DNA of 64,000 nucleotides from Trichosphaerium sp. ATCC 40318 (GCA_038496445.1 JALMLS010000299.1:202311-266310), one strand, 5' to 3'. Positions 10,693-61,640 are shown, counted from the stretch's first letter. Numbers and translations: made by a program. The notes: generated from the letters alone by a model not told the origin.

Positions 10693-10888
10693 GCAACACG
10701 CTCACATCAATAAAAGCAAAGCTTTTCGCAGCCCCTTTTTTGTTTAATGCCAAAGAATAAAAAAAGAAAAACTCAGTTTTGTAGTTGTTTATCTACAATC
10801 ACTAGACGATTTTATGATTCGTCAACTCTACAAAAATTGCTAGTACCACACGGTTGTTTCGAACGCGTTAATACTGTGACGCTTTTTG

Positions 10889-13484
10889 TCATAGTTGGCC
10901 TTTGTCGTTTTGTATTACATGTTGTGCTAGTTGTTTGTACAACGCCAATAGCTCTGGGATATCTCGCATTGTTAGGTCTATAGCTTCAACATTCAAAAAG
11001 CGATCCTAGAAAATAGTTAGCCCGGTTGTTGAGAGAAATAGTTCTTACTATATCCTTGATATTATGGGCTTCTTTGTGGTTCATTAATAGCTCCGTAGAC
11101 TGTGGCGCTGAATTATACTTGTGGTTTGCCTCATCAACTTCCTGTGAAAAAACAAATTATTACTTGTTTATGAAGAAAGGTAATGTCGGTACCTTTGTTG
11201 GGGATGGTGTCATTGCTACATTAAAATCGATAAGAGGTCCAGGTGCTGGTGTGGATGGTGGAGAAACCATTTCTATAGGTGCTGTGACTTCTTGAGATGC
11301 TTCGCTACTCTGAACTAGTTCACCAACGGTGGAGTCCCGACTAGAGAAAGCTTTTGCTGAAGGCCGCGAAGAATCGCCTGAAAACACTTCCTCAGGTTTA
11401 TTAGGCTGAAGAGGTAACATTGTAAGTGGCACAGAGCTGTTGTTTTTTGGCACTAAAGCATCTTCCGCTATTTTGTAAAGCCTTTAATATCGTTAGTGGT
11501 GGAACTAAGAGATGACCAAACCTTGCAAATTCTTCATTTTCTATGTTAAGCTTTGTGGCGTCCAAGTTTTCTAAAAAGTCTACAGCAGATTCCAAGTGTG
11601 TAAAATAATAACCACTCTCTGTGATCATCTTCTTTGGGTCTCTAAACCTTTGTATATATCTTTTAGGTTAAGATAAATGGTAGTTACATCGTTATGTGGT
11701 AAAAGAAGTAGGATACTGAATATTAGAGCATAGCTGTGGCGGATTAGCTTTGAGTACGATATATATTAATATTGGTAAGAATTCATCAGCACCAGCAGGG
11801 TGTCCTTGAGAGCTTGCTTTGTTTAAAATTCCTGGATATTAAGGAGAAAAATCGCAAAAATGACAATGGAAAAAAATGTCAAAATGTGTAATGACATGTG
11901 TCACAAAGGATACGGTAAATAACCTTACAACAGTTTAAAATGCAAATCATTTTATCACGTGGGGCACGGTAATTGTTAATTTTCCGTAGCTCTATACAAT
12001 ACATTAAGGCGCAACGTGTTATATGATGGTAAAATAAATTGCGTGCCTTGAACACCCAGATCAAATTTCTTGTCATCAGTATGATACTTTGCAATGTCCA
12101 AATGACTTGGCGTTATAAATTGCATACACTTTATTCGTTTTGTAATGGCTTTATCCCTTGCTAACTCTTCTATACTTGATGAAAAGCAACTGTGACGCAT
12201 AAGTGATACAGAAGGAAAAGATTTAAAGCCGCACCAATCAAAAATTTTTATCATTAGATATTTTTCTATTTGCTCTGAAATGACGTCAACTTCTTCTTGC
12301 GTGGCTTCTCTGTAGAGTCAAAAATTAGCCATGTTCAAAAAAATAGTCTCTGTACCGCCACAATTTGTGTTCATTCATTTTGTCCATAATATGGTCTATA
12401 AACCCACGCACTTCATCAACTTGCTCTTCTGTGTTCGGCGGTGTAGTAAGAAACGCAGAAACCCACCTAAATATCATATTACATTACAAGGGATTCGTCA
12501 TTTACAGCCTTACGCTCTAACATGACTGTATATATCAAGAGCTTTAGGATCTTTGAACTTTGCCCAAAATAAATCTTTACCGACCAATCCTGTCTTATCT
12601 GTGCTGCTCGTCTCCTTTGCGCCGGCTACTGCCCCAAAAAGCCTTCCCCATCTACTCTATTAATACATATACAATTCCTATGGTAAATCACGTACCGACT
12701 TTCTGACTTGTCTTGCTTTTTCTGCAATTTTGCTTCAATCTTCGCCTTGCTCCATGAACAGCCACTGTATGTTAAAGGTTCTGATATCAAAGTAATGTGA
12801 ATATTATGTCCTTGAATACTCATTTCACCATCGCGAAGTACTTGCACTGTCTGTAAAGGGTTTTTTGCGGAAGAAAATTTAGCGTAAGTGTCACTAAAAT
12901 TCGTTTAGTCTGAAAAACGCTTTACGTTTGTAGCAAACGTCGACGTACGCTAATGAACTGAAGATAACTTGTTTCCTTGGGTTTGGCTTAATTTGCTTCC
13001 TTTCTGATATTCTGTGCATTACTTTAACATCGCCCTTTAGTTTGTGTTAATAATGCGCCACTTTCTAAGATGATCTTGTGTACTTTAGTTTCTGTTATGC
13101 CTAAAATGCCTGATAAAAGTTTAGATAACGTTATGTTAATGCGTTGTTGCTCGCACCATTTACAGTGAGTAATTGCTTCTTGTTTGATGGGTTTGTAAGC
13201 ACAACGTGTGTCAGGATAAATTGCTTTGTAACATCAATGCCTGCAAGGGCCACATTCTGAGGTACCAATATGGAAGCCTGGTACAGAGTATCAAAGAAGT
13301 GAGGTAAAATAGCACTCAAATTACCTTTTTGTAAATAATAGGTTTTACGAGGTCTCTAAACGCTGGCTGCTGTAGTTTGATAAGTATGGCGTTATTCTCC
13401 CTGCGAACAGTTAGTACGATAGTGGGATTGCTTAGTCGCTTACCTTTCGTAGTCTAAGAACGTGCTCTGTATTCCCGCTGACAT
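10889..13484 (-). CDS. VPS9: VPS9-domain Rab5-family guanine nucleotide exchange factor
   Basis: [64 protein letters not shown]; C-terminal [17 protein letters not shown]. Confidence 0.9.
11660..11716 (-). other. U12-type (minor) GT-AG intron, phase 2
   Basis: 5'SS GTATCCTA; branch TTATCTTAAC followed by CTAAAAG; removal restores SNIQYIQRF. Confidence 0.8.
11832..11913 (-). other. U12-type (minor) GT-AG intron, phase 1
   Basis: 5'SS GTATCCTTT; branch TTTTTCTCCTTAAT then ATCCAG; removal restores KVIYRILNK. Confidence 0.92.
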
Positions 13485-13610
13485 GTTTGGGCGTTAGGCA
13501 GAACTCATACGTTGTCTGGGGCACTGGAGAATTTAAAACTAGAAATTTTGTAGCAAATTTACGAGACTGGTGTAAAAAAGTCTGCCTTAGTTTTTGACGC
13601 CATCTACAAC

Positions 13611-15556
13611 ATGTTGGGGAGTGCTGCGGTACAGGCCGAGAAAAACCCGAAGCGAAATTCGCTTCTTCTGCTGTTGCTGGTGTTTTTGGTTGTTCTTTTA
13701 ACACTGCTTTGTGGCGTGTTGTTTCAGTTCATGGTAGACACTAAGGTGTCTTTCAAAGCGTTGTACAGTAGTTATGATCCGCATTACAAGCCTGTCGTTT
13801 TAAAACCATCGAGTGGTACGTAGTTTGCTACCTCACGTGATTGTTTATTGTTATAGCTGATGTAAAGCATATCGTAAAACGAATGAAGTATTGGCGCCCT
13901 ATAAATGAACAAAAACCTATCAATGAAGAACGTTGGCTTGTTTTCGAGCCATGGCGCGTAGTATGGAAATTTATACTAATTTTAACACGTCAACAGGGCA
14001 GCTGGCATAAATAATCGAAGAATGTCACTAGAAACGATGGTTGTAATGGCTTATCTGACTAACAGGCAACAAAAAATTCTCAAATGTCGGATTGACACTC
14101 TCATAGAACCCTTGTACTACCAAAGCCATACGTACAATACCCCTATTTACAAAAAGTGTCTTACACTCATGTACGTGCATGTAAGTTGTATTGTAGACTC
14201 ACAGTGTACTAGTTATGGGATATTGAAGACATGGCACGCGCTGTACCAATCGTGGAATTTGATTATTTCGAAAATAATTATGCTGCCTCTCATCCAGGTA
14301 ACCACGTGCCTAGTTTCTCTCTTACTAACTCTTTGAAGGATGGTATGATGAAAATAATCCACAAGTGATGTTTGTATGCAGATGGACTGATATTCCGCAG
14401 CAGCAAACAATATTTGCATGGCCGAGAGTCCCAGTCATTGTACAATGGTAAATTTCAACTTTTATCAACTAAAATGTCTAAAGGCAACACCTTTACGGGA
14501 TATGATGGAGAAATGGAGAGCTCCTAAGATTGGAACACTATATAGTAGCGAGCCACCTGGTTTCAATACAGCGCCAGTACTGCACTTCCCTGGAAGCGTT
14601 GTATTTACACATTTTTACACTTGGTATTGGTAAGGGAACCTTTTTTGACTTGTCAGTAGTAAATTAAATGTATGAAGGTACTCGGAACCTATTATGTTCA
14701 AGCAAGTAGCGCAGCTTATGAAGGATTACGTACACTTTGTACCAGAAGTTTATGTTTTATCTGCAAGAATATTGGCCGCTATGCCAAAGACATTCTCGAC
14801 AATACATTACAGACGAGGCGATTTTCGTATCCAGTAGCAATGAATTTTTTGTCACATGTGTTTATTTTGTGCCCTTAACTTTAGACCAGAGTATAAAGAC
14901 CAGCGACACATTACACCCAATCAAGTATTTGAAAACACGTTTGAGTTATTTGAGGTACTTTTCCGCGCTCTTGTGCATCTTAATTAAGTGTCACGAAGGA
15001 AGGAGAAGACATATACGTAGCAACTGATGAAGACATGAAAGTTTTCAAGCGCGATTTTATACCTGTATTCGAGGTATACAGTTTTACCTTTAATTACTAT
15101 TATAGTTTGCTAATGATCTCAAAGAAACGCTATAAAGTACATTACTACGGCATGTACGAGGATTTGATCAAGTCTGATGTCACAAACGTGTGGCTTCCAA
15201 TGGTTGAAACTGTAATTTCATCTCAAGGCAGAGTTTTTGTTGGCACTTTGTAAGTTTATCCTCATTTCATTAGTTTCTCAATGCTAACCTTGTAAAGGTT
15301 GTCTACATTTTCAGGGTACATTACGCGATTGCGTGGATACATGCCTCAAGTAGAGAATAAAGAATATTATTGGACCTGTTATAAGTATCCAAATGATCCT
15401 GGATACACTGATGGTCCATTTACAAGTGAAAACCACTTGCATGGTACTTAAAAAATTGTGAATCTAAACCTAAAACGCTTAGGCTGGGGCAGAGAGTATC
15501 CAGACGCATGGAGCGGTCTAGCAACTGTTGAACCAGAAATGAATGATTCAAAATAA
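13611..15556 (+). CDS. GDP-fucose O-fucosyltransferase family protein, type II membrane
   Basis: N-terminal TM helix; EPWAAGINNRRMSLE, TNRTLVLP, HYRRGDFQYK, YVATDE, VFVGT.STFSGYITRLRGY. One probable homopolymer error near 14350. Confidence 0.85.
14827..14889 (+). other. U12-type-like intron with degenerate 5' site, phase 1
   Basis: 5'SS GTATCCAG; branch CCCTTAAC; the second AG must be used to restore HYRRGDFQYK. Confidence 0.72.
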
Positions 15557-15697
15557 AAATGTAATGTAGAGTAATATTTATTTGGTGTGCGGGGCCAAGC
15601 TATCTTGTGTGACACCTTTGGTTTTTTTTTTGGCTACTAAAATTGTACAAAGGTTGGTTTTGGCTATCAAATCTTTGTTCTCGCAAATACAACACAA

Positions 15698-17222
15698 ATG
15701 GCAGCTTTGGGCATTGGAAATCCTCTATTAGATATCAGCGTAAACGCACCTGATTCATTGTTCGCAAAGTAAGGCTTTGGAGTGTTAAAAAAAGTTTTTT
15801 TGTCTTATTCTGCTTAGATACAAATTGGAGACCGGTAAGGCTATTCTCGCTGAGCCAGAGCACCTTCCATTGTGCGTAATATAACTTCAACGCCAAAGCT
15901 AACAAAAAGTAAGGTACCCTGAAATTCAGGCTAACAAAGATGCTGAATACACTGCCGGTGGTGCTTGTCAGGTACGTAGAGGAAGAGTTTTCCTGACGAC
16001 TTCTCACTTCATCGCTTCCGCACGAACACGCTAATAATATTGTAGAACACTATGAGAATTATCTCTTGGATGCTACCAGGTGGTAAATCCTCAAACTACA
16101 TTGGTTGCGTCGGTAAAGACGACAACGGAAAGCTCTTGGGGTATCTACGCTACAGAAAGTTTTTCATTGACGCGTTTTTAGCACCGTATGTAAAAAAGCC
16201 GGTGTAAACGTCCACTACTTGGAAGATGAAAAAACAGCAACTGGAACATGCGCTGTTCTCATCAAGGACAAAGAACGGTAACCGGAGAAATAGAAAAAAA
16301 TCAATCTTAATTCTTTTTAGTGCCCTAATCACAAACCTTGGTGCCGCCAACTGCTACACCACAGAACACTTTGACACACCAGCAATTCAAGAAGTTGTCA
16401 AGTCCTCAAAGTTCTTCTACGCAACCAGCTTTTTCTTGACTGTCTCTCCAGAGACACTTGTCAAAATTGGCAAACACGCTGCCAGCAACAACCAAGTACG
16501 CTTTTTTCAAAGATATCCAAAAATTGTGATAGCACTATTGTCCGTGCATGCCGACTGACCACATTTCTTAATAGCTATTTATGCTCAACATTTCTGCTGA
16601 ATTTTTGGTTCAATTCTTCTGGGATCAAATGCACCAAGTATTGCCATACGTCGATATTCTTTTCGGTAACGAACACGAAGCCGCTGAATACGCCAAGAAA
16701 AAGGGATGGGATGTACGTGGAACCCTACTAAGTTATGAACATACTGACGTATTTTATTAGGCCACCGACTTGAAGACTGTAGCTAAGAAACTCGCTGAAG
16801 AGGGTCCAAAAGTAAACGACAAGAGAAAGAGAATTGTTGTATTTACTCAAGTACGTTACATGAACTTCTTGTGCAATACAAAAAAAAATAACACTCTTTC
16901 TTAGGGCGCTGACCCAACCCTTGTCTACAAAGATGGTAAAATCACTGAGTACCCTGTTCTTCCATGTCCTCGTGAGGAAATTGTTGACTTGAACGGTGCT
17001 GGTGATACCTTCGTTGGAGGATTCATCGCTGGGTACGTTGAAATGCTGCTTTTTTTTTGTCGCTTTAATTCTTCCATAATGCTAACAATCATTCCCTTTA
17101 GTTTGTTGTCTGAAAAGCCTCTTGAAGAGTGCGTAAAGGCCGGCCAATTCTGTGCTTGGAATTGCATCCGTAGCTCTGGTGTAACTGTACCAGAAACTTG
17201 CACCTACAAATGGTCAAACTAA
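15698..17222 (+). CDS. ADK: Adenosine kinase
   Basis: GIGNPLLDISV, AGGACQNTMR, TGTCAVLI, LITNLGAAN, DILFGNEHEA, IVDLNGAGDTFVGG. Confidence 0.95.
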
Positions 17223-17354
17223 ACGTGTAATGTGCAGCTGTAGAAGCGTTTACAAATTTTTATAAACACGAAATTGCACAAAATGAAAATGTGACATTTG
17301 ACAGGTGTCAATGTCATTCCTAATTTTCTTTTTGGCGCACCTTTTCGTTGGCGC

Positions 17355-18927
17355 TCATTTCCTGCCCTTTAGCATCTGGAAAACAGCACGATTACTCAAA
17401 TTGGTTGTTAAGAATTTAATAAATTCTAGTACAGCCACATCAGCCTTTTTTCTTTTGTTGGTGTATACCAATACCAGCGATATTCTTTGCTCTGCATTGC
17501 AAATGTAGTACGTGGCTGGCATTTTGTTGTCGTAAAAATATATGGGTATATGTGGCTTCCTTCGGTTAGAACCCTGATTGTCTTGTATGAGACTGACAAC
17601 GTTCGGCATGTGCTCCATCGATAGTCGCTCTGGAATAGCAAAAACAGTAGGATATGATTTTAAACCAGTTAATGGTTCGTCTGGCATGGACACTGGACAA
17701 ACATATGGTGATTGTGGATTAACGTGGGTGCCTTGTGTATCGTAAACAATGCTTTGAGAGAAAAAAAGTTAGCTAGATACAATTAACATTAGCACGTACC
17801 TAAAGTTAAAGCATGCAGTGCGGCTTACAAACTGAGCGCATAATTGCGCATAATTCAGCCACAATTTGGATCGCATCGATGCCAGAGGGGATTTTGGAAA
17901 GAAAGTATCTTGTCGCTTTTACAAGGATTATATTAGTACATTGTAGTTTATTTTGTACAAAATGAATACAATAACGTTTGACTTGACGTACTGTTTTGAA
18001 GAAGTCATGAAAGTAAAATGTAAGTTTTGCTGTGATGGCACTGAATAAACGATCCAGCCATGCGTGAAGTGCAGTTCTCGGTATTTTTACTTCCCTCTAT
18101 TATTGTGGAGTGAGGGAAACTGGGGCTATTAGAGTTTTTTAGTACCTGACTTGGAGATGTCGAAAAATCAGCTAGAGCTGATTTTGCGCTCAACATATGG
18201 CAAACACATTCCTTCAAGTTGTACCTCGCCAAAGCTGACTGACAGGCGAGTAGATGACGCAAGGCAGTTAACTCAGAACTAATTGCGTTTAACAGTTGGG
18301 TATTACTTTTTGACAATTAGTTGTACCTGAATGTTACTGCTACATTTGTTACTGTTGCGTGCTTGATATCACGTGTTAGTGCCACGTGAATCGTGTCTAT
18401 ACGAGCAACAATAGAAATTAAGTCTTGAGGCTTGTCAGAACTCAATGTACGATATATTTCTAAGGATTGTAATCTAGTTGATACGATGCTTATAATATCC
18501 TGAATGAGAAGGGAGTATTGACTTTGTGGTTTGTCTGGTGCTTGTAAAAATTGAGGGTATATTTTGCTGAGCTGGGTGAGTATAAGGTTGTACATGTATA
18601 CGAGATCCTACAAGTGTCAATGTCAAAAAATAGTGTTCTATGCGCCTAAGGAAAACTCGTGGTAATACCTTTTTGCGAATCCATTTGTATTCAAGATAAG
18701 AAAGGTTGTAGTACATCATTTCGCATTGAGCTAATTGTACTAATGAAGGAGCTAATAACCACGGCGATTTAGCGTTTTGAGCAGTCTACAAATATTAAAC
18801 GTCAACTAAACTTTGGCTTCGTCGCTACCTGGTATGGTTTGAGGACGTCAGCTGCTTTACTACAGCTTAGGCGCTCTAATTCTGCAAAGAAGATCTCTAC
18901 AGCGTCGCTGAATCTTAGTTTATCCAT
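17355..18927 (-). CDS. KICS2: KICSTOR subunit 2 (C12orf66)-like protein
   Basis: C-terminus EHMPNVVSLIQD...YFYDNKMPATYYI...LVLVY..K...D..VLEFI..L...L.N..VFQMLK matches the C12orf66 pattern. Confidence 0.75.
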
Positions 18928-19032
18928 GCTTGAATGTTTGGCGTTTAGGGCTCCCGCTCTAAAGAGCATTTGTACTAAAAAGGCGGCCAAAAAGTCTGTG
19001 GTAGTCAAATAGTTTTGCAATAACCAACAACA

Positions 19033-20253
19033 ATGGCCGAACAAAAAGAATATCTAACCAAGATACAAGATATCACATCCACTCAAACTATTGACGAGCA
19101 AGCCAAGACGTTTTTGCGTGCTTTTGTAGCAGAGTTCTCAGGAAAGTAAGTGTAGTAGTTGTGCTACGCTCTAGCTAATTCGTGGTAGCTTCGAGGTCAT
19201 ACTCGATTTAGCTGCAGCTTTCAAGACATTTATTCCGGTACTATGCAACTACATGTACTCTGTTCTGACTAATAATTAGGAAGATGACCAAGAGCTAAAG
19301 ATTCAAGGTTTGCAACTAAGTAGTATAATGTATATTCACTAACAAAATGCCAGAACTTCCAGAATTTGATGCTCATCGCTTCTTGGAAGTGCGTGTAGGA
19401 TTTTATAGGCGTCAACTAATATAGTTAGTCACGTGGTGAAACAAAAACAGTGAAGCAAATGCGTGCTGCTTTGTACGCAATTGATCTCGATAAGAACACA
19501 AAGGTAGCTTTCATCGGTAAGTAGTGAAGCATTACTTAATATGAGGCTAATTGTACCGTAGAATACTTGATGTTTAAGTATGATAAGACTCTTGAACAAC
19601 TATTCACTGGTGCGCATCTTGCAACTACTCCTTGTGTTAAATACTCCTTCAAGCAAAACCAAACACTGCTGCTTTGGCGAAACTAGAGAAAGCAATTGCT
19701 CAGTACATGGCAGTATTCGAAGAGAAGAAGCAGAAAGAGCAGAAAATGCAAGATCTAGAAAAGGTAAATTTGATTGTCATCTATGCCATTGCTGAGTTTT
19801 TTGCAGAGGGCTAAGGCTGGCGATAACAAAGCCAAATCTGAGCTAAGACGTATGCAAATGGTACTAAACTACTTCCTATTGTTTTTTATAACAAGTGTTT
19901 AGCAAGATCCTGCTCAAGAAGCCAAGAACGAGATGTGCGCTACAACTATGTGAAACGTTTTCTCATTGTCTTAGGCAAGCCCTTCAAGCAAAATTGGCTG
20001 CAAAACGCGCTCTTAAAAATCCAGGAGATGCTGACGCAGAGGTAACATACAAACTGCTTATGTGACCTTTTCTGACACATTTCGATGTAGGCGTTTAACA
20101 AAGAGCAACAGCGTATAGAAGACGAAAAGCGCAGAAAGGACCAAGAAGAAAAGAAAAAGGCACAAGATAGCCGCGCTAGATTGAAGGTACAGTTTTCGTG
20201 TTTTAAACGCAACCTTATGTCGGTCGTAGGCGCGTGCAGCACTATGGGAATAG
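19033..20253 (+). CDS. Calcium-regulated actin-bundling protein (ABP34/AbpB-like, EF-hand)
   Basis: QAKTFLRAF...EFDAHRFLE.RGETKTVKQMRAALYAIDLDKNTKVAFIEYLMFKY, followed by a charged coiled-coil tail. Confidence 0.8.
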
Positions 20254-20453
20254 CGATTGTACCAACGTAGGTCCGTACAAACATCATCGTCTGTTATCGC
20301 CACCAGAAAAAAGTGACGCATCACGTGTTATAAAAACGGTTGGAATAAACTTATATTAATGCTATTCGAATAGTTTTCCTTTTTTCCGTTGTGGTATATA
20401 ACAAAAAACTTGTGTGCTTTTTTTAGTTTTCCACAGTTCAAAGGGCGTTCCAC

Positions 20454-23129
20454 ATGGGGCTTCTTTGGTGTAAGCCAGAGGACGCAGTGAACAATGGCCA
20501 TGGCGTAAATGGGTCCCGGCAACGAAAGAGAAATAGTGTAACGCCACAGAAAAAATATCAACAAAAACCAGCCTGGAAAAAGACTGAACCGTCGGATGAA
20601 ATTAAGCGCAACACTTCGTACGTTGTTATCTTTTTTTTTTTTGACATGTCCTCCGAAAAATCTTTGTAGCTGTGCTGTCGGTACATAAATAACGTGTATT
20701 TACTTATTTACCATATCTAGACAACGAACGTATACAGATTTTCGTTTAGCGCTTACAGAAGATTTTCCTGTTCCGTTTGCGCCAGCAAAAGGCGATAAGA
20801 ACGATGACGCGCAGAGCCCCGTTGATTTGGAAGAGGACTCAATAACGAGTGACTTGAAACAATACACACGAACTGTCATTTTAACACAGAAGATCGCCAG
20901 GGGATTCGTTGCTCGTTCGAAATATAAAAAATCGAGAAAATACATAGTTACAATACAGACCATGATAAAACGTGCGTTGGCTATGCGTATGGCAGAAGAT
21001 TTAAACGACTATCGTATAATACAATCGTTGTTTCGCAGACATAACGCACAAAAGACTTTGGAGCAAAAGAGCACGTCTACAAAACATCATTTTGGTATAG
21101 TTGTTTATAGTTGTAGAATACGTGGTTGTTTTGAATTTGCAGAACTGTATCAGAAGATGGATTGCCTGGGATCTTGCATCCCGAAGAAGTAGGTAAAATT
21201 AGTGCATAACAGCTCTAAGAAACTTGTAGTGCATGGCGTTACAACTCTACAGTCGCTTATCAGACGGTACAGAGCATCTCTGGTGTCTCAGCGTATAGGT
21301 GCCTTAATCAGATTACAACTGTCAGTTTATAACTTCTTAATCGCCTTATTAGGTGCTGCTAAGCACATACAACGCATATATAGAGGATTTGTAGTGAGAA
21401 GAGACTATAGACGAGTCTGGCTGCTACGTAAGACTATCAAGTTACCACAATTTGCTGTTGACACTTTCTAGGTGCCCAAAAGTCAAAGTTCCGTGCAATT
21501 GTAAAAGGATTCATTGCAAGGCGACGCTACAAGCGCTTGAGTACGACCATAAATTGTTGCTGTCCTAACTTGCTATTAGAAAGGCGTGCACGTATTGTTA
21601 AAGAAATACTCGATACAGAACGTGAATACGTAACCCGTCTTCTCATGATAAGAAACGTAAGATGAGATAAAAATAAGTTCCTAAAAGATCATTTTAGTTG
21701 TACTTTAATCCAATCACTGCCAAGCCGAAAAAATTCGGAATTACTCAGGAGAATGTAAAGGTAATGAATGACTTGCAAACTAAGATAAAAGAAACTAACG
21801 CTGAATAGGAAATATTTCCACCATCCCTTCAAATCATTACAGATTTCCACAGTGCTGTACTTTTAACACGACTACTTGAGCGATCAGAGAGCTGGAACGC
21901 ATGGCAAACACTTGGAGACTGTTTTTCACAATTCGTAAGTTATCCGTTACAGTATAAATATTCTAAGTTCTTACCCTAGTCTGGATTTCTTAAAGTGTAC
22001 ACTACCTACATCAATAACTATGAGGCATCTTTAAAGTGTTTATTGGAGCTTAAAGCAGATTCTCCAAAGTTTGCTGCTTATCTCTTGGTATGTGGTTTTC
22101 TCTGATTGTTTAAAAGGACAAATTTGAGTTTTATGCAATTACTAAGTGAGAGTAGGAATGCTCTTCGCGTCCTGAATCTAAGCTACTCGACATCCAATCC
22201 TTGCTAATTGAACCTATTCAAAGGTAAGGCACATTTAAGAATTTATAGTTTAACAGCCGTTTGTAGGATCCCACGTTATCAACTTCTACTAACGGTAAAT
22301 AAAGATATAACTTATGCATTGTGCTTACAGAAAATAGGACCTTTTGAAAAAGACACTGCAAGTACACGATGATTATCCTCTGCTTCAAAAAGCTCTTTTA
22401 GATGTCAAGCAAGTTGCATCTATGATAAACAATAGAAAAGCAGTACATGAAGACAAGCAAAAAGTGTTAGAAGCCTTCAAACTTATAGTGCCTCCACAAA
22501 CCGTACGTAGATGCCACGTTTACTTTGTGACTTATGCTCCTTCTAGTACCTCATTCAGCCAACAAGAAGCCACGTACACAACGGGTTGCTGAAGGAGCTG
22601 ATTTTGAAGGACGACAGACAAGAAGGCTTTCATTACTTCTTGTTTAATGATTTATTGATAAAGACGAAGCACTCTGGTGGTATGTAACTCCTTTTTGTTC
22701 CTGTTCTTAGCCTTTGTAGTATTTAAGACCAAAAAATTCCGTGCCAAGTGGGATCTCAGTAAGCTCACATTTACTCGTGATTTATGTATCCTCAAGTTTA
22801 GCTTTTTAAAGAACTAATCAACTGCGTTACTTCTTTGACTTATTAGCTTTCGTGTTGCCTAAAAAGAAGGTGATTCCTTTAGCTTTTGCCCTGAGATATG
22901 GAGAAAACAGTATGATATTGAGAGGTATGTATTTAACAAGTAGAATGAGTTAATGACAACCTCTCTAGCTAAGACGGAGAAAGATTTTGAAGCTTGGACA
23001 GCAGCATTTGAATTAGCTATGACAAGTCTCGGTGACATGCGAAAATCGAGGCAGCTGTTGTTATCTAATTCAGCCGGTAGTCGAAGCTCTGAAGGTTTGA
23101 GTACCGGTGGAGATAGCGAAAGAAGCTGA
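20454..23129 (+). CDS. IQ-motif + RhoGEF (DH-PH) protein with putative N-acylation signal
   Basis: MGLLWCK start; several IQ motifs (TQKIARGFVAR, IQRIYRGFVVR); EILDTEREYVTRL, LLIEPIQRIPRYQLLL.DLLKKT; PH FLFNDLLI. Confidence 0.9.
22786..22846 (+). other. U12-type GT-AG intron, phase 1
   Basis: 5'SS GTATCCTC; branch TTCTTTGAC then TTATTAG; removal gives RDLSFVLPKK in the PH domain. Confidence 0.75.
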
Positions 23130-23138
23130 GAATAAACT

Positions 23139-24169: not shown

Positions 24170-24371
24170 GCCGTTTCAATCTTCAATGAAGGATACTGTG
24201 AGATGTAAAACGCTCACAACGGCTCATCGCTTGTAGCTAGGATCATAGGGTATCAAAGTAGCTGGTTGTTAGGCTTAACAAACGCGTTTCTGAGTAATCC
24301 CAAGTGACACTAGCGTTTTGTGGGAGATTTTTGCGTACAAATCATTTTGTATCGTACGCCACGTCACACAG

Positions 24372-26285: not shown

Positions 26286-26496
26286 ACAGCAATGATTTTT
26301 GTAGTTATTGCAGTCAAAATAAAGTTGGGCTTCAATGCTCATATAATTCAAAACAAGGGGTTTATTGTTGCCACTCAGAGGTGGCAGTTATTTATGCAGC
26401 CTAAATGAGGCTAAGTTTGTCTTGTATAAAGTTGTAATGTATAGCGAATGAAGTGAAAGGTTGGTGGTTTGAATATCTAATGAGAGTGTCAAAGAC

Positions 26497-27368
26497 TTAC
26501 AAGGCTAGCCCATTTCTGGCGTTCTGCTTTACATGTGAGTGAGTGTGGCCTACAAAGAAATTGTAAGCAAAGTAGTTGCCGTGATCGTTACATAGCTACA
26601 AAGCACGTACACCAATGTGGTTCAGTATTTTGGTTGGATCCTCACGTATTATGGTCGTGAAAGCAGCGACGACCATAACGAGGTGAAAAGCTGACGCAAA
26701 ATCTATGCGTGCCAGAGAAGCTAGCAAGTTGGGCTTTTCTTTTTTCTCTTCTGCGTTGTCATTGAGCGGAGGAGCACAAGCGTGGTTGCCAGTAGAGGAT
26801 CTTACGGGTATACCTTCATGCTCTTTTGCAAATCGCCTATGGATGTGTTACTAGAATCTGGGAGCGTACGACTTGTACGTACTCTGGTTCACCCAGACCA
26901 AATTCCGCGCTAACGCGGGAATTTGCTTCTACCTTGAACACTCCGTCTCTAAAAATAATTTTAGTGTCGTTGTAACAACGGGAGTAACGCACACTCTTCT
27001 CTCAATTGCAAACGCAATTGGGTTTTCATCAAAAGAGTAGAGAGAGAGCTTAGGTTCTTCTCTGGGCAAAAAGTCATCTAATTAAAGGGGTCAGTTGTTG
27101 GGCGAACAAAGTCTATTAAAAAGCTATGGGCAATATAAAAGGTGCTTGCCTCCTTTGCTGTAATCCGTGTAGCAGGTAGAAACTCGTTCGCCACGCTCGT
27201 TTAACGATTTGTCAAATGAATCATTAATAACGCATGGTGCAGGTGTTTGAGCGTATTCGTTATGTTCTATGGTAGTGTTAGGTAGAATTCTACAAATTAC
27301 TTGCTATAACCGAACGTACCAGAGTTTGTTTGTGGTACGCGACCAGCACTTAAAACGCGGCTTGCCAT
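26497..27368 (-). CDS. Hypothetical protein (multi-exon, one GC-AG intron)
   Basis: Spliceable open frame MASRVLSAGR...DDFLPREEPKLSLYSFDENPIAFAIERR...; no recognisable domain; 3' end uncertain. Confidence 0.45.
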
Positions 27369-27660
27369 GTTGAAGGTGGTTTTCTTTCCGAAGCTAGGGG
27401 ATTAAGCTTTGAAGGGAGTGGACGCTGAATAGATACAAGTATCAAAGACGTGCTTTATTAGTAAAGCGCGCGAGTCCGTTAAGCATTAAGGATGAATTGC
27501 CATATTAAGCGACCTGAACTGGGTCGCCGTTCCCTGTTTTACACCAAGGACATTATATAGCACAGCTACTGGCAAAACGCCAACGCATTTGAGACTTTCT
27601 TGCCAAAAATCTCCTGGTTCGTTAAAAAAAAAAAGACAGACGACAAGGGTAGTATTAAAA

Positions 27661-30600
27661 TTACATTGGAAGGAACATCTTAGTAGCACATTCGCTTTCA
27701 ATCTGGTTGAGACATTTGTCCCTTTCTTGTTGGTCAGCAAACTGAAACTTTGGTGCTTTCCGCTTGTCTCGTAACTCAAGCTCCAGTTGGTTTCCTAAAG
27801 AAACGTCACAATTTCACAAAGAAAACACGTGTTTTAAAAAAAACCGTACCAGCCGGTTTTACAAGGTCAACAACGTTTGTGTAAGCTGTCATATCCATAA
27901 ACTTTTCTTTTTGCTTCTTTGTGCGTGTGTACAAAATTGCATCATTGAACACTAGCAGTTTTCCAAGGTATCGCTGTTTATCAATCATTTCTACACTATA
28001 TTGCTCAATAATCTTACGCCCTGGAGCAACCAGCTTCTAGAGATAGGTGTTAGCAATGCTGTATCAAATTGTACGTGCGACGTACCTCCATTGGAGCGCC
28101 AATTATACACCTCGTGGCTGTCAACAGCTTGGTTATATCTTCAGCCTCTTTCTTTTGGGAATTTAAGAAGCTACTGACTTTTTCAACCTTTTCTGATGCT
28201 TCTTCTAGCTTGGCATAATCCGGATGATCCTTATCAGTATATTTTTGCAAATCCTGTAGACAATGAGCATTGATAACAAAATACTAAAGGCACTTACCCG
28301 TAACAACAGCGTGTAACGTGGTATTCTTTGAACTGCATAATATTGGTGGTAAGTGAGTTGCAAAGAGATACTAAAAACGTACCAGGCATAATTAATAAAC
28401 TATAGACATTTAAACCTCGACATACTGGATCCGCCTCTGCTTTCTGACTTGTTAGATTGTCAACAATCTATGTTTGATCGTACTTGTAACCATTTCTCAA
28501 ATTTAGGGATTGTTTTAGCTCTATTAAGTGTTGCTTGAGCTTTGTCAAAGTTATTAACATATGTTGTGTATGATTTTAGGAAATCCGACTGTAGTTTAGT
28601 AAGAAAAAACCGATAGTGATACACCGATGTACCATTAACAAAAATACGTCTCCCAGAGTTTGTTTTGTGGACCACTTGGACATTTTATTATTTAGTGCCT
28701 CGAGGATCATCATATTGTATCCGTAGAGTATCTCTACAATTGAAAATATGTCCCTTGGTTAGGTGAGTTAGTTGTTACATATTTTAAATAGTGATGAGTA
28801 CCTGACTTCAGCTGCAGAAATAAAAGAATCTGTTCCTTGACACAGAGCCAGGAGAGGGTTCTGGAATCGTTTTACAAGGGTTCCCAGATCCCGAACATAA
28901 TTCGCCTCCGTGTCCAGTAGTTCTTGAGCTACTTTTGTTCTCTTGAAGTGTTGTTTCGCTGATAGAATGCGTTAAAATAATAAAATAAACTACCTCATAC
29001 CTCGCTTGATCTTGACCTCATCTTGGTTTTCTGTGATCACGATGCCAGCAATCACTTTTGTTGACGACGAACTCTTTTCCTCGTTTGTGTTGGATTGTGG
29101 CGTAGGAGGTCTCATCATCCCTGGTGCATCCGATTTACTACTTGCTCGAATAGCTATTGCGTATATAAGCATATATAAGTGTAGGAATAAGTACGTGGGT
29201 GACTCGTTCTTGGGTTCTCTAGTGCCGAATAACTCTTCTCTCGTCTACCTGCATCGAAAAGACATTGTAAGTAAAATAGAGCTCAATAAGTGACAATATA
29301 CCTTTTGGATTGGTGGCTGGTTCTGGGAGACCTACTTCAACTGTACTTGGATCCACGTACGCAGGCATCTTCTGTGATTTTCTTTTCATTCTTCTTGAAA
29401 GTCGTTTAAATAAACCCTTTAATTTGTCAGCCATCGCAGCCACAAGAACAACCAGTACCTTTGAGCGCCGCTTTTGTTTACCGCTGGTTTTGGGCGACGA
29501 ACTTGGGCTGGCCGGTGGTGTTAATGTGGGTTTGTTGTGTACACCTTCGTGAAAGCTCTTCACTCGCGTCTCAATGTCCATCCCCAAGTTATTTTCTGAA
29601 GCTTCCTCCGTTACAGCGAATGTAGGGGTTGTATTAGCTAAGGGCCTCGCTGGAGTGGGTGAACTGGATGGTGAAGAATTTCTAATATAAACACTTTGCC
29701 GAACAAACGTATCCTCGAAATCATCGAACACGTGGGACTTTTAAAGTGGTTAGTGGACCCTCAATAAATATTTCTTCGTCTCACCTTGAGATATTCTTCA
29801 ACAGAGTCTTCTTCTAGATCAAATTCTGGTTCATCGTCTTCAAAATCTGTGCAGCATAAGTAACATTTTTATACATCCTTTTTTAAGTACTCACGTGGAA
29901 AATTCATGTTAGTGATTGCCTCAAGTACAATCTCTTTCAAATACTCGTCATGAGATGTGTCCAGAAAGTTTTGTAACACAGTAGGGCCATCTCCCTTTTG
30001 AAAATCGCGTCTGCATTTACCTGCGTTTGTTGTTAGTTCTAATCTGAAAGATTTGGTTGCATGCCATTTATTGCTAATCGCCTTATCATATGAACAGCGC
30101 GTGGCCTAACTTGGTCCCATGTTGGCCCTTGTTCTTTAAACACGTGCAGTGCTGCAGTTATAGCGCCGTTTTGTCGTAGCTTCTCATTGACTTCCTTGTA
30201 CAAAGCAAGGTTCTCTAGCGTAGAAGCAGCGAGAGTTTGTAAATCTGGTCGATCAGTGAAGGTAACAAACGCATTTATGAGTCCTAGTTAGGGTGTTACT
30301 TGTAAACTTGAATGATAAGGGCGAACCGCTCAAAGAGCTTCCAGGGATAAACACCTCGGCAGTCTTTTCTAAAGGAATGTTAATCATACAATCATAGACG
30401 TCAAAAGGTTACCTTCAATAGATAAATTAAGAATAGTTTTTAAAGATCCAGCACTCGCTTCATTTTTTTCTTGGGCGAGTAGAATCAATGGTTTCAATGC
30501 GTCATGATCAACCACAATCTTTCTTGCTTCGCCTGCATAGGTTTTAACATACGTAGTACAGCATGTAGCGTACTGTCAAAAAACGTAAGGTTAACTAAAG

Positions 30601-32290
30601 TTGCTGCCTAAAGTCGTTGTTATTCCAAAGAATATTTTTTTCATGAAAGGAAGTCTGTACGTGCCACTTTAGATTTTACATCAGGTCTTTCGAGCGGGGA
30701 TATTAACACTTTAACAAGAGACCCAATACTATCCAATAGAAGTTGTTGTAAACCATCTGAGCAATTATTAGTATTATGTGTAATGTGGCGTTCATACCAT
30801 TTCCCATTAAATTTGATAAAGCCCATGCGCTCCTCAATCGCACGTCTGCATCCTCTGCAGTCAAACGGGAAAGAATCAGTTGCACAAAATCGGTTTCCAA
30901 CAACGTTTGCTTTAACAAGGAGATCGCGTCATCTGATGTGGTGTTATTATTGCTAACAATATGAGAAATTACCTTTTGACGCCAAATTGACAACTACACC
31001 AAGCGCTACTTTAGCTATTGTTACTTCATTCGATTGAAGGTGTGGTGGCAAACACAGCAAACCGTCTAGCCTTGCAAATTCAAGAGCACAACTGTCTGGT
31101 TAAGACTTTAGTGTTTTCAAATTAATAATGGTAATTCGTACCCTCCCTGACCATTGCTGCGAGACATACAAGAGAATACTTAACAATTTCGCCGTCTTGG
31201 GCTCGCAGGTGTTGTATGAGAGGCTCAACAGCATTATTGTTGCACAAGTAAAGACACGCATCCAAATCTAAAGAGGGATGATTTTTAAGAACTACACTCC
31301 AAATTTGCAGTACCTCGTCCAGTAATTGTTGCTATCGATCGAAGGCAGTAAGCTGTGGTCTCTTTTTGTTTGCTTGCTAACATCAAATGTACTAAACACC
31401 CTGCATCGGCCTCATTGATGTTGTATTTGGCTACAAGTGGTTAATATTGAATCTTTGTACCTGACAAATCTTTTTAAAGCTACCTCTTAGCACGTTAAAA
31501 TATGTCATTGCTAGCAATTTCTGAACAGCAGGCGTAAGGTCTGGCTGTTCAAGCACCCTCCTTATTTTAGATACTCCATCAGTTTTAACAAACATCGGTA
31601 CAAACTTCTCTAAAAAAAAACCGTGTTTGATAAACGTTTGATAGCACGTGATAAAAACGTGATATATTGTATCATCTTACCATCTCCAGTTGCGTTGACT
31701 GCAAATGTTAGGATATCAGTGACATTTTCTGGAGTATCGTCAAAAAGGGCGACTATTCGCCTCACGTGATCTTCAGTTAGGATGGACGCAACTTTAATTG
31801 GTCAGGAACCCACTTTTGTCAGAACAAAAAACCAAAAGAGGAACAAATTACATTACCTGTAGCGACTTGGTTTGTTATTGCTATGAGTGAGTTTATAGCA
31901 AGCCGGGCATTATTGCTCTTTAAAAAATCTAAAAACATATCAAAGCCTACGAGGAGTTATACGACATGCCGTTAAATGCTCAAAATAAAAGATCTGAACA
32001 GACCAACACAATTTAAGTTTTTACACTTGATATTTGCAGTACGTGCCTTGGCTCTGCGAAAGCATTGGTTGGACATAGAACACCGCATTGCGGCTTATTT
32101 TAATGTTTTCTGATGAAAAAACGGTGCGCCATCGGTCTACTACACTGACGTCCTCCGGTACTATAAATTAGAAATGTAGCCAGCGTCTCGTCCTACCTGG
32201 GCTTGTCTTTTCGAGTCCCGTCTCGTATTTGTACAAATAATCGAGCTTGCCAAGTATTTCTGTGTTTGTGCTACCTGTTGGAGCAGCCAT
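27661..32290 (-). CDS. Armadillo-repeat RhoGEF (ARM-DH-PH; Dictyostelium GxcC-like architecture)
   Basis: ARM-like exons (VRLRSAWALSNL, LAASTLENLAL), acidic/Pro linker, DH (ELLDTEANYVRDL, LIMPVQRIPRYTLLL.DLQKYT), PH (LLVFNDAILYT); 5' exons tentative. Confidence 0.85.
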
Positions 32291-32533
32291 GGCGTTTGAG
32301 CAACAAGAGAGGATCTCTTGGGTAAAATAAAACAAAAAATTTGAAGAGGGTTTAGAATAAATGTGAATTTGGTTTTTATAGCAGTATAAAAACAACGGAA
32401 GTCGCGCAAAAGGCTAACCATACATATAATATTTACATTTTGGTGATTGCCAATCTCTTTCCTTATGTAATGGTTCTTTTTTTACTGCAATTTGTTGAGT
32501 TCCTTTTTCTGCCCGAAGCGTTCCGGTTTTTTT

Positions 32534-33403
32534 TTACTCTCCCATCTTATCCAGGATGTTGCGTACCAAATGGTTCGTATTCCGCTGGCCAGTACGCGTT
32601 CGTGAATTTAGCATTTGCCTCTTTCTTGTTCTGTTCGCTTTGTCCTCTTGTAGTTTCATACTTCTACGTTTTATTTTCGTTTGGTGATCAATTTGCTCTT
32701 CATGCTTTTACGGCAGAGTGTCAACTCAAAACAAATTATGGAAAAAAAAAACTTGGTCTTGCAAAAAAAAAAAAGTTAATGTTTGTACCCTTGACTTATA
32801 CCTCCTTTTGAGGTGGTAATACGGGTCGCTTGCTGGACCGTCTCCATATAATTCTCTGTCCTTTTTCCTTGCTGCTTGCTCTGTCTCTCGTTTTTTCTGA
32901 TCAGCTTCTTTTATTTCTTCCCAAATCTCTTCCTCACTTAATTTTACAACTTTTCTTCCTTGTTTTCTTTGTTTTCTGTACTATCATGGGCGTTACAACA
33001 GACTTTGCAGGCGACGTATATGTGTAAAAAGGCGTACCTTTTCCCTTAACCGACGTTTTTTGCGTGTAAATTTGTCGTATTTATCAAGGTCAGGACTGAC
33101 TCTGTGACGATCTTTGCCCCATGGTAGAGCCGCTGGCGCTGTGTCAATGTCGTCATAAATATTTTTCTACACTTATTAGTATTGTACGCGTGGAATTCGT
33201 GTACGTGTTCTAGGCTAGCGTTTGTCTTGTGTAACGCGCTTAATGCACTTCTTTCCTGTTCGCGAGCTTTTCGCAACTCCTTATGCTCGAGTATGCTTAA
33301 AGCTATATTAAATAAGTATATTCACCGTCTTTGTAACAAAATTACCTGATGCTGGATAACGCGGCCTGCTTTTGCGTCCTCTTGGTCCATCTCGATACGC
33401 CAT
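32534..33403 (-). CDS. FYV7/TAP26 (CCDC59)-like rRNA-processing protein
   Basis: Basic protein ending RKRQMLNSRTRTGQRNTNHLVRNILDKMGE, similar to the family C-terminal RT..GQP.M...LL.KI motif. Confidence 0.55.
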
Positions 33404-33726
33404 AGTATAAGAAGCCGACAGCTGGCAGTAGTAATTGGTTTATTTTACGTTTGGAAAATATAGAAATTAGTAGACCAGCAATGCGTTGTCAAACGCTTCA
33501 AACAATCAGTTTACATGGCTCTCTCGGCCATAGCCAAGTTGCTCAAGATGGAAACCAAGTACAGGCGTTGATTGCTTAAAGTCACGTGCTCACAGTAGAG
33601 TCTTTTTTTGGCTTACTTTGGCAAGTGTAACTCTTCATTGTTGTATAGCGGTGGTTTTTTTTACCTAGCTTTACTCCGCTGGCCTTAATCAGCCTCATTT
33701 CGAAATAATAAAACGCCGATAACACC

Positions 33727-35515
33727 ATGGATAAAGATAACACGCCAGAAGACACTACCAAAGATGGCTATGACGTGAAGGACATTCTCACTTGGCCTGC
33801 TTGGCGCGTTGTGCATCCTACAGAGAGAAACAGCAACAAGTTTTTCTTAAAAATGCTCATGGTACGTTAGAAAATACCATAGTGACGCTAAGGGTAGCAG
33901 GAAATATTTTCAAGCGCTGCTAAAGTGTATACGCCAATTTACGCTATATCCACCTATTTCTCGAACGGTAGGAAGATAGACGTTAAATACGCCAAAGAAG
34001 TTATAATTGCCACATTGCGTAGTAGTTCCATGATAAGTAAGCAGCTACACAAATACTCGCTACACCTTCTCACGCTAGATAGCTGTCAATACCGTTTGTT
34101 TTGGTTGGTTGACATGTAAACTGTTAGAATACGTCAAAGAGCACAGACCAATATATTACTTGTCTTGTGCGCTTGCCTCGTCTTATAGTGGGATCATGAT
34201 CGAGAAACAATCAAGGTATGACACACTGTATTGATGTTTTATTTTTTTTTTGTGATATTTTGTAACTCTTTTTGACAGGAGAGGCGCCCTGGTATGTGCT
34301 ACGGATGGGATTCACTGTTGCTAACACCTATAGGCGTCGTACGTGGGTAATATTACACTCGAGACAATTTGGCGGATGGCATGTTGGTATCGCGTTTCTA
34401 AAATATCTAACTACTTTTAGGCTCGTGCCAGGGAACTTGTTGCACCTTTTACGTAAGCTATTACCATTGTTCTACCTGTAAAACCGTTTTGACTACTCAC
34501 GTTTATTCAGAGGTGGCCTAACATTATTGTTTGCATCTGCAATGTCAATATTGTACTACTTGTTTACTCAAGAACCACAATACGCCAAACCAATCTCTTG
34601 TGCGCGCGAATTTAAAATCAATCAACCTTTCCTACTCACTATCACTTGTTAGTTGTTTTGCGTATTTTAGTAGGTGAAGAGGGTAAACAATCTGCGCTTG
34701 AGCGTACAATAGGAGGTTTGTTGTTTGGCGCTACATACACCAATCACTGGACAAAAGTACACTAAAATAAGTGCATTGTAGCGTTTATAACGATTTCGGC
34801 ATAGTATCACGTGCTTGTTGGCTTTATTCGCAACTTTGCTTTTGGCGTTCTAATAAAGCTCCTCGTTGTAGTAATTGGCTACATTCTAAAGAGGCGCAGC
34901 GCTAAACCAGACGAACCAATAAAGTACAGTGCCCTCAGTGCCTTATTTTTCTCTTATATTTCTACTTAGATCTTTCACCCAGCAATTAAAGGAATCTGCT
35001 GGAGAGACTTTCAAGATTGGTTTGTTCCTTGCAACACTAATCGGTGCCAATCGTCTCACTGCTGTCGTAATGCGGTCTATAGATGGCGGAAAACGACCTT
35101 CCCATGCTCTTGTAGCGGGTTTCATATCGGGTATGTTATCTTATTTCGTAACATCAGGAATTTATTGTATACAGGATTATCAATGGCAATATGGCAGAGT
35201 ACTTCGATTGCTACGTACTTTACAGCGAAGGCTATTGAATCTGTCTTTAGTCTAGCTGTTGGAAAGGGCTTGGTATGTTTTTTATGTGTTTGTAAGTGTT
35301 TAACTTGTATACAGATTTCGTCACCTGCAAATATTGGTGCACTCGTTTGGGCAGCTTGTGTATCACTTAATCTGTATGGAATGACTTTTGAGCCACATAC
35401 AGTTAGAGGCAGTTTCAAAAATTTCGTGCATAGAGCAACTGGTAATAGAGTAAAGCATTTGGAAGAACTATCAGTTCATCTTCGTAAAGTCAATAACATT
35501 CCAGAAGTACAATAA
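33727..35515 (+). CDS. TMEM135: TMEM135-like multi-pass membrane protein
   Basis: HPTE, VYTPIYAIS, ATLRSS, MIEKQSRR, ALVAGFISG, SIATYFTAKAIE, EPHTVRGSFKNFVHRATGNR. Confidence 0.75.
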
Positions 35516-35586
35516 AAACGTTTTATAGATTTCTTTATCTTACACCAAATACAATAACTCTTTTTCTTTCTTCAGGACAATGCCAA

Positions 35587-38500
35587 CTATTTTTTACACT
35601 TTGAGAGTATGAGTCCTAAAAGCTTACTTCTGGCTTGGCTTAGCAAACCAGCAACAAAAGGAGCATGAATAGATGCTCGCTCTGCATTTACCACTAAATA
35701 GCATGAACAAACAACAATTACACATCTTATCCGTACACTTTGAAAAGAGCCAATCGTGGAACAACTCTCCTTTGCTAAACACTGGCGGATTAGGAACTGC
35801 AGGTCCAAACGGTGGCACTCCCTAAACATTAGTTCAGCTGTAGTTATATGTCGCGACGTGTATGTACCTCCTTAATAGCCAATTCTACCATATATTTACC
35901 ACGTTGTAGCGGTTTAACAACAATGAAGTTGTCTCGATTCATTAAGGTCCAACGATTTGTATCAAACAGAAAAAAAAGAAAAAGAGGATACGCAAGAACT
36001 GCCCTGAAAAAGTAGGAGGTTTGAATTTCCCGTCTCCTTCCATAAACACAATGCATGTCAAGTTATTACAAATATGTTTCTTCTTTAGAATTATACTCCT
36101 CGCGGCTGAACTAGCAGTCTACACAATTGTCAAACTCTTCCAAAATTTATGCAACTTTGATACGCACCTCATTCACTTCCTTTAGAGGAATATATGTTGA
36201 GACATGGAACATAAACTCGAACTCACACCATCTTTGTACTATTGAATGCGTACCATCCGATTTATTAGCTAAGTTTAATTAGGATTGATGAACAAGATGG
36301 GCATTACCTGTGGTATCAAGTCCACCGGAAAAGCCTTGAAATCCCTCTAATTTTACTTTTCGGCCAAGAAAACTCAGAAACTCATCAAAAGCAGAGCTTC
36401 CTTTTGTGTTTTCGAATATTTCATCTTCAGCTGTTTGGTTTTTTGCAACGTAAATGACACCAATCTTATGACGTATTACTTTTGAATACTTGTTCTTTTG
36501 ACACCTCTCATAGTCGAGTAGTTCCGACATTATACATGGGTGCTACATAAAACGTTAGGTATTAACTGACAGGTCTAGTCTTCTTACTTTTGTAGAAACC
36601 AGTGTTGCGTTGCTAAATAAGGCGTGCTCAGTAATCATCTTTGCTATCTTCTTAATTGTTGGCAGTTTCTTGGTGCGGTCTACTTTAAGATGGAAAGTTT
36701 TATCTCCAGTCCGCACTCTAATGATACCCAACACCCGCTGCCCAGAAATACACGCGGATATTATTATTGGCTAAACAGTTAGTAAACACGCTAGATAGTG
36801 GACACGCACTTCGTCTGGATGTCCTGGAACAGGGATAGTGCCCAGTAAATTGCAGTGTTCATTTTCTACGAACTGCATACCAGAGCCATCGTCGGTGCTC
36901 TCTGAGCGGTGTTACATAAAAAACAGAATACAATTCTCATACCAGTCAACCCTTTGGAAACTTTAAAGAAATTATCTTTGTAGTGAAACGTCGTTAGCTC
37001 AGGGTCTTGAATAAACAGTTGACGGCGAGGAGATTGTCCTGAAAGTGGATCTACGGACTGCCCAAGCTCGACAATATAGCCGGGAGCATCCTAGGTATGT
37101 CAACAACGAGAGTACATCAACTACTACCAAACCTTTACAATGTCCACATCTGTGGGTATTTCGTTTGTCTAAATGTATAAATACAATCAACTTTCTGTGC
37201 AACGTGCGTACGCTTTCTATCTCACCAATGTTTCCCCAAAGATCTTCAAACTTAAGGAGAGCCAGTGAGCTCTTGAACGGTACTTTAATACGCTTAAATG
37301 CATTACTACGCCTTCGTATCTACCAAACCAATTAGACACAATAAAGCAGTATCTAACTAACAATTGGTGGGGTGTCCTCATCGCGAATTTGCAGTCCAAA
37401 AGCTGCTGCGGCATCATACTTTCGCTTTGTGGTAGTACGAGAACTCTGGATAAGTTTAGATAATTTATATGTGAAATTGCAAACTACTACCTTTGGTATT
37501 CTGTGTATCCTGCTAACTGACTTTGGCATTTGAATATGCACTTTCATATCTATGCGACTATCATCTATTTCCTTGCTGGTCCGTAGTGTGTTGTGTTTGC
37601 GCCGCATTTTTTTCTGCTTGGGTCTACTTGTCTCCATGACAGTTATTTTAGTTGGTCTTTCTTTCTTAGGTCTCTTTTTCTTTTCTTTGTGTTTTCCTTT
37701 CAACTCTGTTGCGTGGTTAGCCGGAATCTTCCATAAATAAAATCAGAGGTACTTTTGAAAAAATCTACTATGTGATCGCGTTTACACATTTGCCCTTCTT
37801 CCATTGGTGTACCAAAAGGTCCCTTACGACGAATTACTGACATGATGCTACTATGCTACATACCACAGTGTCTACTTCTGCTCCAAAACTGATGAGTACT
37901 TGTACAGACTGGAGATTGCCTTTCCGAGCTGCAAGATGTAGCGCTATCTATTATTAACACTTATCCTCATCCAACTGTACTTACCAGTCTCTTTCAAACT
38001 GTTCGTTGCATCGACAGTAGCACCGTTTGTGAGTAAAAATAGCAAATTTCCTGGGCCAGACTGTTGGATCAGTTAGTATCAACACTACAATTAGCAAACT
38101 ACCTTCAAGGCTGCGTTGTGTAAGCAAGTTTGTCCATGCTCGTTGCAAGAATTTACATCAACAGTTCCCAATTGAAGCATGATATGAGCAATAAATAGAA
38201 CTCTACATTTTAGCTAAGTTTGGCTACGATTTCTTTTGTAGTGTCGTACGAGTCGCTACATTTACATTGCATCAGGTAGTGTAATGGAGTAGATCCGGAT
38301 GCATTCTTTGCATGTCATTAGTGCAAATATATAAACAATACTATCGTACCTTTGCCCCAGGATCCGCCCCTGCGTGGATAAGCTTTTCTGCGATATCAGC
38401 GTGCCCTGCAGCTGCTGCACAGTGCAGTGGTGTCCACCCGTTTTTGTCTTTTGACTTGGGTTCGTTTAGTATACGTTTTACAAGCTAAAAGTACCGTAAT

Positions 38501-61524: not shown

Positions 61525-61640
61525 CGTTTGCACCAAAACGCAGAAAAAAAAGAGAAGGAACCTCGAGTTTGGCAGAGCGCTCTTGGGTTGTATTTTTTTT
61601 TTTTTCAAACATTTGTACAAAAGAAATTATAAATATACGC

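Follow-up and report, generated by a model that had tools for sequence, protein, structure and literature searches.

The 64,000-nt stretch of Trichosphaerium sp. ATCC 40318 analyzed here (JALMLS010000299.1:202311-266310, called the window below and always meant at its full length) contains five introns that begin with GTATCC, and we consider these, with a probability of roughly 85%, to be true U12-type introns, of the minor-spliceosome class and with GT-AG boundaries, distributed over four ordinary nuclear genes of a very intron-rich, short-intron, amoebozoan-like genome. Their dependence on the minor spliceosome is predicted from the signals that they carry. The original prediction, made from the sequence alone, had named GTATCC donors at 11913, 11716, and 35991 on the minus strand and at 14827 and 22786 on the plus strand, and all five were found at these positions (Table 1). 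The compact lengths it had described (57 to 82 nt) were borne out by exact spans of 82, 57, 63, 61, and 59 nt, as was the statement that the introns are in phase 1 or 2 only (phases 1, 2, 1, 1, and 1). The branch motif that it had noticed near the AG is TCCTTRAC-like in 5/5 introns, 8 to 12 nt from the 3′ end, with six or seven matches over the eight positions of TCCTTRAC; in the 82-nt intron, the branch A of TCCTTAAT lies 7 nt upstream of the last intron base. Four of the five donors had been said to deviate at +7/+8, and the complete GTATCCTT is indeed present in one donor, with TA, AG, TC, and TC at +7/+8 in the remainder.

We considered that the five could instead be major-spliceosome (U2-type) introns that start with GTATCC by chance, given that the U2-type donors of this window are variable and degenerate (GTAYGT, GTTTGG, GTAACC, and others), that the branch sites of U2-type introns are similar to the U12 motif, and that an intron of ordinary length starting with GTATCT is spliced at 16141. 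This explanation appears very improbable when the five are compared with the other introns of our gene model, which comprises 31 genes and 219 introns and reads 53% of the window as coding. From the U2-type donor frequencies of the window, 0.34 GTATCC donors would be expected among the 219 introns, compared to the 5 that were seen, and C at donor position +5 occurs in just 7% of local U2-type donors. The GTATCC start is also paired with a TCCTTRAC-like branch site at a fixed distance: at least 6/8 matches, with the branch A 7 to 11 nt before the last base, were found in 5/5 of these introns compared to 27/214 of the others (Fisher P = 5e-5). The five are longer, at 57 to 82 nt against a median of 47 nt for introns of the window (10th to 90th percentile, 41 to 65 nt; Mann-Whitney P = 0.002), and none is in phase 0, compared to 41% of the 214 others, although in so small a sample 0/5 has a chance of about 0.07. 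Moreover, the intron at the orthologous site of one of the five in Planoprotostelium is unambiguously U12-type, as described below. One contrast drawn in the original prediction did not survive this comparison. Ordinary introns of the window also go without a polypyrimidine tract (mean pyrimidine fraction at −20 to −4 of 0.58, against 0.53 to 0.82 in the five), and this property thus does not discriminate between the two classes.

The window has 11 copies of the string GTATCCT, where 4.4 would be expected. Six further GTATCCTT/ATATCCTT matches (2153, minus; 24196, minus; 7654, plus; 7802, plus; 11050, plus; 56181, plus) were rejected as introns, given that they lack a branch site and are located in 5′ leaders or on the strand antisense to genes. 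No AT-AC intron was found on any coding strand of the window, and a broad scan for [AG]TATC[CT] with frame and branch scoring, whose output was too noisy, added no candidates.

Four of the five introns are removed exactly, as judged from transcripts or from colinearity with protein profiles or homologues. Transcript contigs from four transcriptome-like runs, belonging to four studies, were placed on positions 10500 to 16499 only. The joint 14826|14890 was seen in contigs of 4/4 runs, and at the 11716 intron an X2 contig ends at 11659 with 17 loose letters that, as reverse complement, match the exon ending at 11717. The junctions of these two introns therefore agree with transcripts, the first by joints in four runs and the second by a loose end. 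At the 11913 intron, the depth of a 917-nt X5 contig over 11700 to 11899 was 6.25, which is consistent with a 115-nt exon and not with retention. Given that positions 8-32, 38-69, and 71-103 of the Pfam VPS9 profile are colinear over three successive exons, with positions 38-69 beginning at residue 6 of the exon after the 11913 intron, both VPS9 introns are bridged. Removal of the 35991 intron yields SGQFL, a split CAC (His) codon, and NFIVVKPL, and homologues read SGDFLHNFIVV at this place; Pfam Rap_GAP positions 1-38, 41-69, and 73-108 also lie on consecutive exons of this gene. When the exons on either side of the Rap-GAP intron were compared with PDB sequences, no match was returned. At the 22786 intron, reading through reaches a stop after 10 codons, and the gene model chose the intron despite a heavy penalty; the RhoGEF profile is colinear in exons upstream of it.

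One X7 contig (11555-11815) keeps the 57-nt U12 intron unspliced. Relative to the window, it has three differences in the middle of the intron (4 nt deleted at 11695, and substitutions at positions 11679 and 11684) and an exon substitution at 11776, while the donor and branch site of this retained copy are unchanged. The contig could represent a second allele or strain, present as unspliced RNA or as DNA carry-over.

The 41-nt GTATCT intron at 16141, which stands outside the five, was spliced at 16139/16181 in three runs, and the X7 junction is 16137|16181 plus two letters (AG). Its branch site matches at 7/8 positions, yet its length is ordinary. It is possibly a U2-type intron, a hybrid, or an intron having a U12-like donor with T at +6.

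Several observations weigh against the U12-type assignment or the comparison that it draws on. The window contains no gene for a minor small nuclear RNA (snRNA) or for a minor-specific protein, and Rfam finds a tRNA alone. The U2-type branch consensus here, CTAAC/TTGAC, is placed at a comparable distance and has an overlap with the U12 motif, and 13% of ordinary introns pass the 6/8 threshold. The joint of the 11913 intron is not among the 15 of 32 joints listed, and the boundaries of the 22786 intron are predicted from reading frame and coding potential alone. Finally, the denominator of 219 introns comes from our own model, a self-trained spliced open reading frame (ORF) model with a strict penalty and strand resolution. 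This denominator holds given that the model recovered 13/14 transcript-listed junctions and, over 6 kb with 32 transcript joints (alternatives included), called 27 introns.

The history of one of the five introns could be followed. The 78-aa Rap-GAP exon served as query against protein representatives, a natural full-length homologue then served as query for named relatives, and the genomic loci were compared. In Planoprotostelium fungivorum PROFUN_12807 (MDYQ01000177.1), a phase-1, 54-nt U12-type intron interrupts the same codon (FL|H) as the 35991 intron; the site reads C|GTATCCTTTT...TTTTCCTTGAATTCCTGCAG|AG and carries the textbook U12 signals GTATCCTTTT...TTCCTTGAA. Compared to this canonical copy, the copy in the window is weaker at donor +8/+9 and in the 5′ half of the branch site. 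At the equivalent site, Balamuthia mandrillaris has a phase-1, 102-nt GTACGT intron of U2-type, and metagenome contig L006 has a phase-1 U2-type intron (ttcttgc|GTATGT...GCTAAC...CAG); Circinella minor and Saccoglossus have no intron there. On this comparison of loci, the U12 intron at 35991 is ancestral and predates the split of the lineages leading to this genome, Planoprotostelium, and Balamuthia. The intron at this site was probably converted from U12 to U2 in Balamuthia and L006, a direction taken from the known conversion bias. Part of the U12 repertoire thus consists of retained ancestral introns and not of gains, given that the 35991 intron is shared with Planoprotostelium. PROFUN_12807 has 26 introns, mostly of 36 to 60 nt with GTGAG donors, of which 1/26 is U12-type; since this gene has both, a compact U12 intron among compact U2 introns is not unique to the genome of the window. 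RALGAPA1/2 are minor-intron genes in a human/mouse list (PMC6717393), and, to judge from the coordinates in mouse, the minor intron of these genes appears to be located in the middle of the gene, outside the Rap-GAP domain.

The original prediction had put the five at about 2% of some 200 to 250 introns and had raised the possibility of a lineage-specific expansion. The first of these figures agrees with our gene model, in which the local U12-type density is 5/219, or about 2.3%. The expansion claim fared less evenly, in that the local density favors it whereas gain is contradicted for the 35991 intron, which is ancestral and shared with Planoprotostelium. An expansion would mean that at least 1 to 2% of introns genome-wide are U12-type, amounting to several thousand, many of them newly gained and with relaxed +7/+8 and branch signals, and would make this a second Physarum-like case. 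We regard this as doubtful. In its favor, besides the 5/219 introns of the window, just one of five donors is the full GTATCCTT whereas the orthologue of the 35991 intron in Planoprotostelium has fully canonical signals, and RABGEF1, GAPVD1, VPS9D1, RAP1GAP, and SIPA1 are missing from the human/mouse minor-intron gene list (PMC6717393). However, the sole intron with a testable history is ancestral, no U12-like intron was found at 1 to 11.6 kb or 36 to 64 kb of the window, and the branch sites are mostly canonical CTTAAC and not the TTTGA of the Physarum expansion. Five introns are also too few to establish relaxed signals; with these five as its basis, relaxation is plausible, as is an enlarged and relaxed minor-intron repertoire.

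The way in which the window was selected also bears on this question, as it was chosen after the fact, for looking dense, among about 1,285 windows. A genome density of 0.3% would predict about 0.8 windows with at least five such introns among the 1,285; at 0.5% the expectation rises to about 7 windows, and at 1% it reaches about 92. A genome-wide density near 0.5% could therefore still yield this window. About as likely as an expansion, in our view, is that the genome has an ordinary repertoire (about 0.2 to 0.55% genome-wide) and that the window is unusual, either by chance or through a gene-class cluster, the latter being considered because 3/4 host genes are small-GTPase regulators. The demonstrably ancestral 35991 intron fits such a repertoire, as do the 265 minor introns found in the related Protostelium aurantium by a pan-eukaryotic survey, in which 0.554% is the highest minor-intron density outside Amoebozoa and Physarum is an outlier (PMC10639083). 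On the other side, if the density were 0.3%, less than a single window of the 1,285 would be expected to reach five. We give a genome density of at least 1% about one chance in three and a density of 0.5% or below about one in three, with the rest in between.

In the window, the GC content is 39 to 40%, genes have about 7 introns each, and exons measure about 140 nt. These features fit the values of the Trichosphaerium draft genome, which spans 70.9 Mb in 710 scaffolds with 37.7% GC, 8.7 introns per gene, a mean exon of 154 nt, and 27,369 predicted transcripts (Tekle et al. 2023; PMC10521059). Exact-protein searches with two ORFs of the window matched no record. Runs containing matching sequence came from a 2015 multi-organism transcriptome study, from single-cell-type libraries of 2023, and from a set under one common label. 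If the genome of this marine amoeba carried 1 to 2% minor introns, these would number about 2,500 to 5,000 of about 238,000 introns (27,369 × 8.7; PMC10521059), making it the second richest after Physarum, with a repertoire of ancestral introns and a GTATCC-only donor that could be an intermediate state; this scenario is likewise a speculative one. The Trichosphaerium genome paper does not mention the spliceosome (PMC10521059), and among the matches listed in a literature search, no paper pairs Trichosphaerium with minor introns.

For the reading that we favor, in which the five are minor-spliceosome introns, a mechanism can be proposed. The U11/U12 di-snRNP (small nuclear ribonucleoprotein) would bridge the 57- to 82-nt intron by binding its GTATCC donor and its TCCTTRAC-like branch site jointly, the U4atac/U6atac.U5 complex would join after it, and the 3′ site would be set by its distance from the branch A (8 to 12 nt). 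In U12 splicing, the 3′ site is picked by distance from the branch site. The 14827 intron fits such a distance-based choice, given that the AG used lies 11 nt past the branch A and a nearer AG, at 5 nt, is passed over.

Compared to canonical U12 introns (those of animals, plants, Acanthamoeba, and Protostelium aurantium, which is Planoprotostelium fungivorum at NCBI), the five share the GTATCC core, the TCCTTRAC-like branch site 8 to 12 nt from the 3′ end, the avoidance of phase 0, and the occurrence of one or two per host gene amid many U2-type introns; with Planoprotostelium, they share the 35991 intron at an identical position. They differ from canonical U12 introns in being very short (57 to 82 nt), in having TT at donor +7/+8 in just 1/5, and in being variable at the first two branch positions. 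At about 2.3%, the local density is several times the genome-wide values published outside Physarum, the maximum outside Amoebozoa being 0.554% (PMC10639083). In Physarum polycephalum, U12-type introns make up about 12% of the total (20,899 of about 175,000; Larue, Elias & Roy; bioRxiv 10.1101/2020.10.12.336362); TTTGA at −10 to −12 predominates among their branch sites, and many have +6T donors and noncanonical boundaries (bioRxiv 10.1101/2020.10.12.336362). This share and this branch motif led us to reject Physarum as the source of the window. The five resemble them in their amoebozoan host, in U12-like donors that depart from GTATCCTT, and in a TTTGAC branch site in 1/5. In contrast, their branch sites are CTTAAY in 4/5, all are GT-AG, +6T occurs in 0/5, and their share is about 2% locally, so that the transformed signals of the Physarum type (TTTGA branch, +6T, and noncanonical boundaries) do not describe the five. 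Very compact minor introns are also known from Blastocystis sp. subtype 1, where they average just under 42 nt (PMC10639083). However, 77% of the minor introns of Blastocystis have AT-AC boundaries and phase 0 is enriched among them, whereas those of the window are all GT-AG and none is in phase 0.

Our analysis establishes that another amoebozoan lineage retains U12-type introns, that these are very compact, and that one or more of them predate three amoebozoan lineages. For the origin of the Physarum expansion, a second amoebozoan with a few per cent of minor introns, a canonical branch site, and a shortened donor would, if true, provide a comparison point. A density of 1 to 2% could, if true, be an intermediate state showing how a Physarum-like expansion starts. 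Given the existing draft genome and transcriptomes, the question of density is directly testable.

Table 1. Introns, host genes, and tRNA of the window, with U12-type class assignments as weighed in the text.
Feature	Coordinates	Strand	Size and structure	Signals or motifs	Location or basis
U12-type intron	11832..11913	−	82 nt, phase 1	donor GTATCCTT; branch TCCTTAAT	VPS9-domain gene
U12-type intron	11660..11716	−	57 nt, phase 2	donor GTATCCTA; branch TCTTAAC	VPS9-domain gene
U12-type intron	14827..14889	+	63 nt, phase 1	donor GTATCCAG; branch CCCTTAAC	host gene B
U12-type intron	22786..22846	+	61 nt, phase 1	donor GTATCCTC; branch TCTTTGAC	PH-like C-terminal part, IQ + RhoGEF gene
U12-type intron	35933..35991	−	59 nt, phase 1	donor GTATCCTC; branch ACCTTAAT	Rap-GAP domain, ankyrin + Rap-GAP gene
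Ambiguous intron	16141..16181	+	41 nt	donor GTATCTAC (GTATCT); TCATTGAC 11 nt from 3′ end	outside the five
Host gene A, VPS9-domain protein	10892..13484	−	~626 aa, 14-15 introns, two U12-type	VPS9	gene model, Pfam VPS9 on three exons, transcripts
Host gene B	14231..15553	+	~332 aa, 7 introns, one U12-type	HYRRGDF motif	gene model, transcript joints
Host gene C, IQ motifs + RhoGEF (DH) + PH-like C-terminus	20454..23126	+	~621 aa, 16 introns, one U12-type	IQ, RhoGEF	gene model, Pfam IQ + RhoGEF
Host gene D, ankyrin repeats + Rap-GAP	35125..38883	−	~870 aa, 22 introns, one U12-type	Rap_GAP	gene model, Pfam Rap_GAP; model 3′ end uncertain
tRNA-Thr	47753-47826	+		anticodon CGT	Rfam, 66 bits

Among the host genes (Table 1), the VPS9-domain gene encodes a putative Rab5-family exchange factor. 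The same gene has a 45-nt intron at 12190 to 12234 (minus strand) that was spliced out in transcripts and that our gene model read as coding; ORF-based models can miss such introns, given that this one is in frame and stop-free. Host gene B is possibly fucosyltransferase-like, as suggested by weak leads with protein atlas scores of 0.78 to 0.86, and it gave no Pfam match with single exons as queries. Homologues of host gene D carry the same ankyrin and Rap_GAP architecture.

The remaining observations concern the right-hand part of the window. Positions 48600 to 64000 form an inverted duplication in which, for example, 51062-52374 (minus) corresponds to 60200-61521 (plus), with further matching sites at 50318/62264, 51436/61147, and 48762/63826. 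A 379-aa gene model (IPT/TIG plus a ubiquitin-like exon) and the same motifs are mirrored on both arms. The tRNA-Thr gene sits in the 139-nt gap between the same-strand gene models 45435-47764 and 47903-49460, and an alternative gene-model pass put it within a 111-nt intron.

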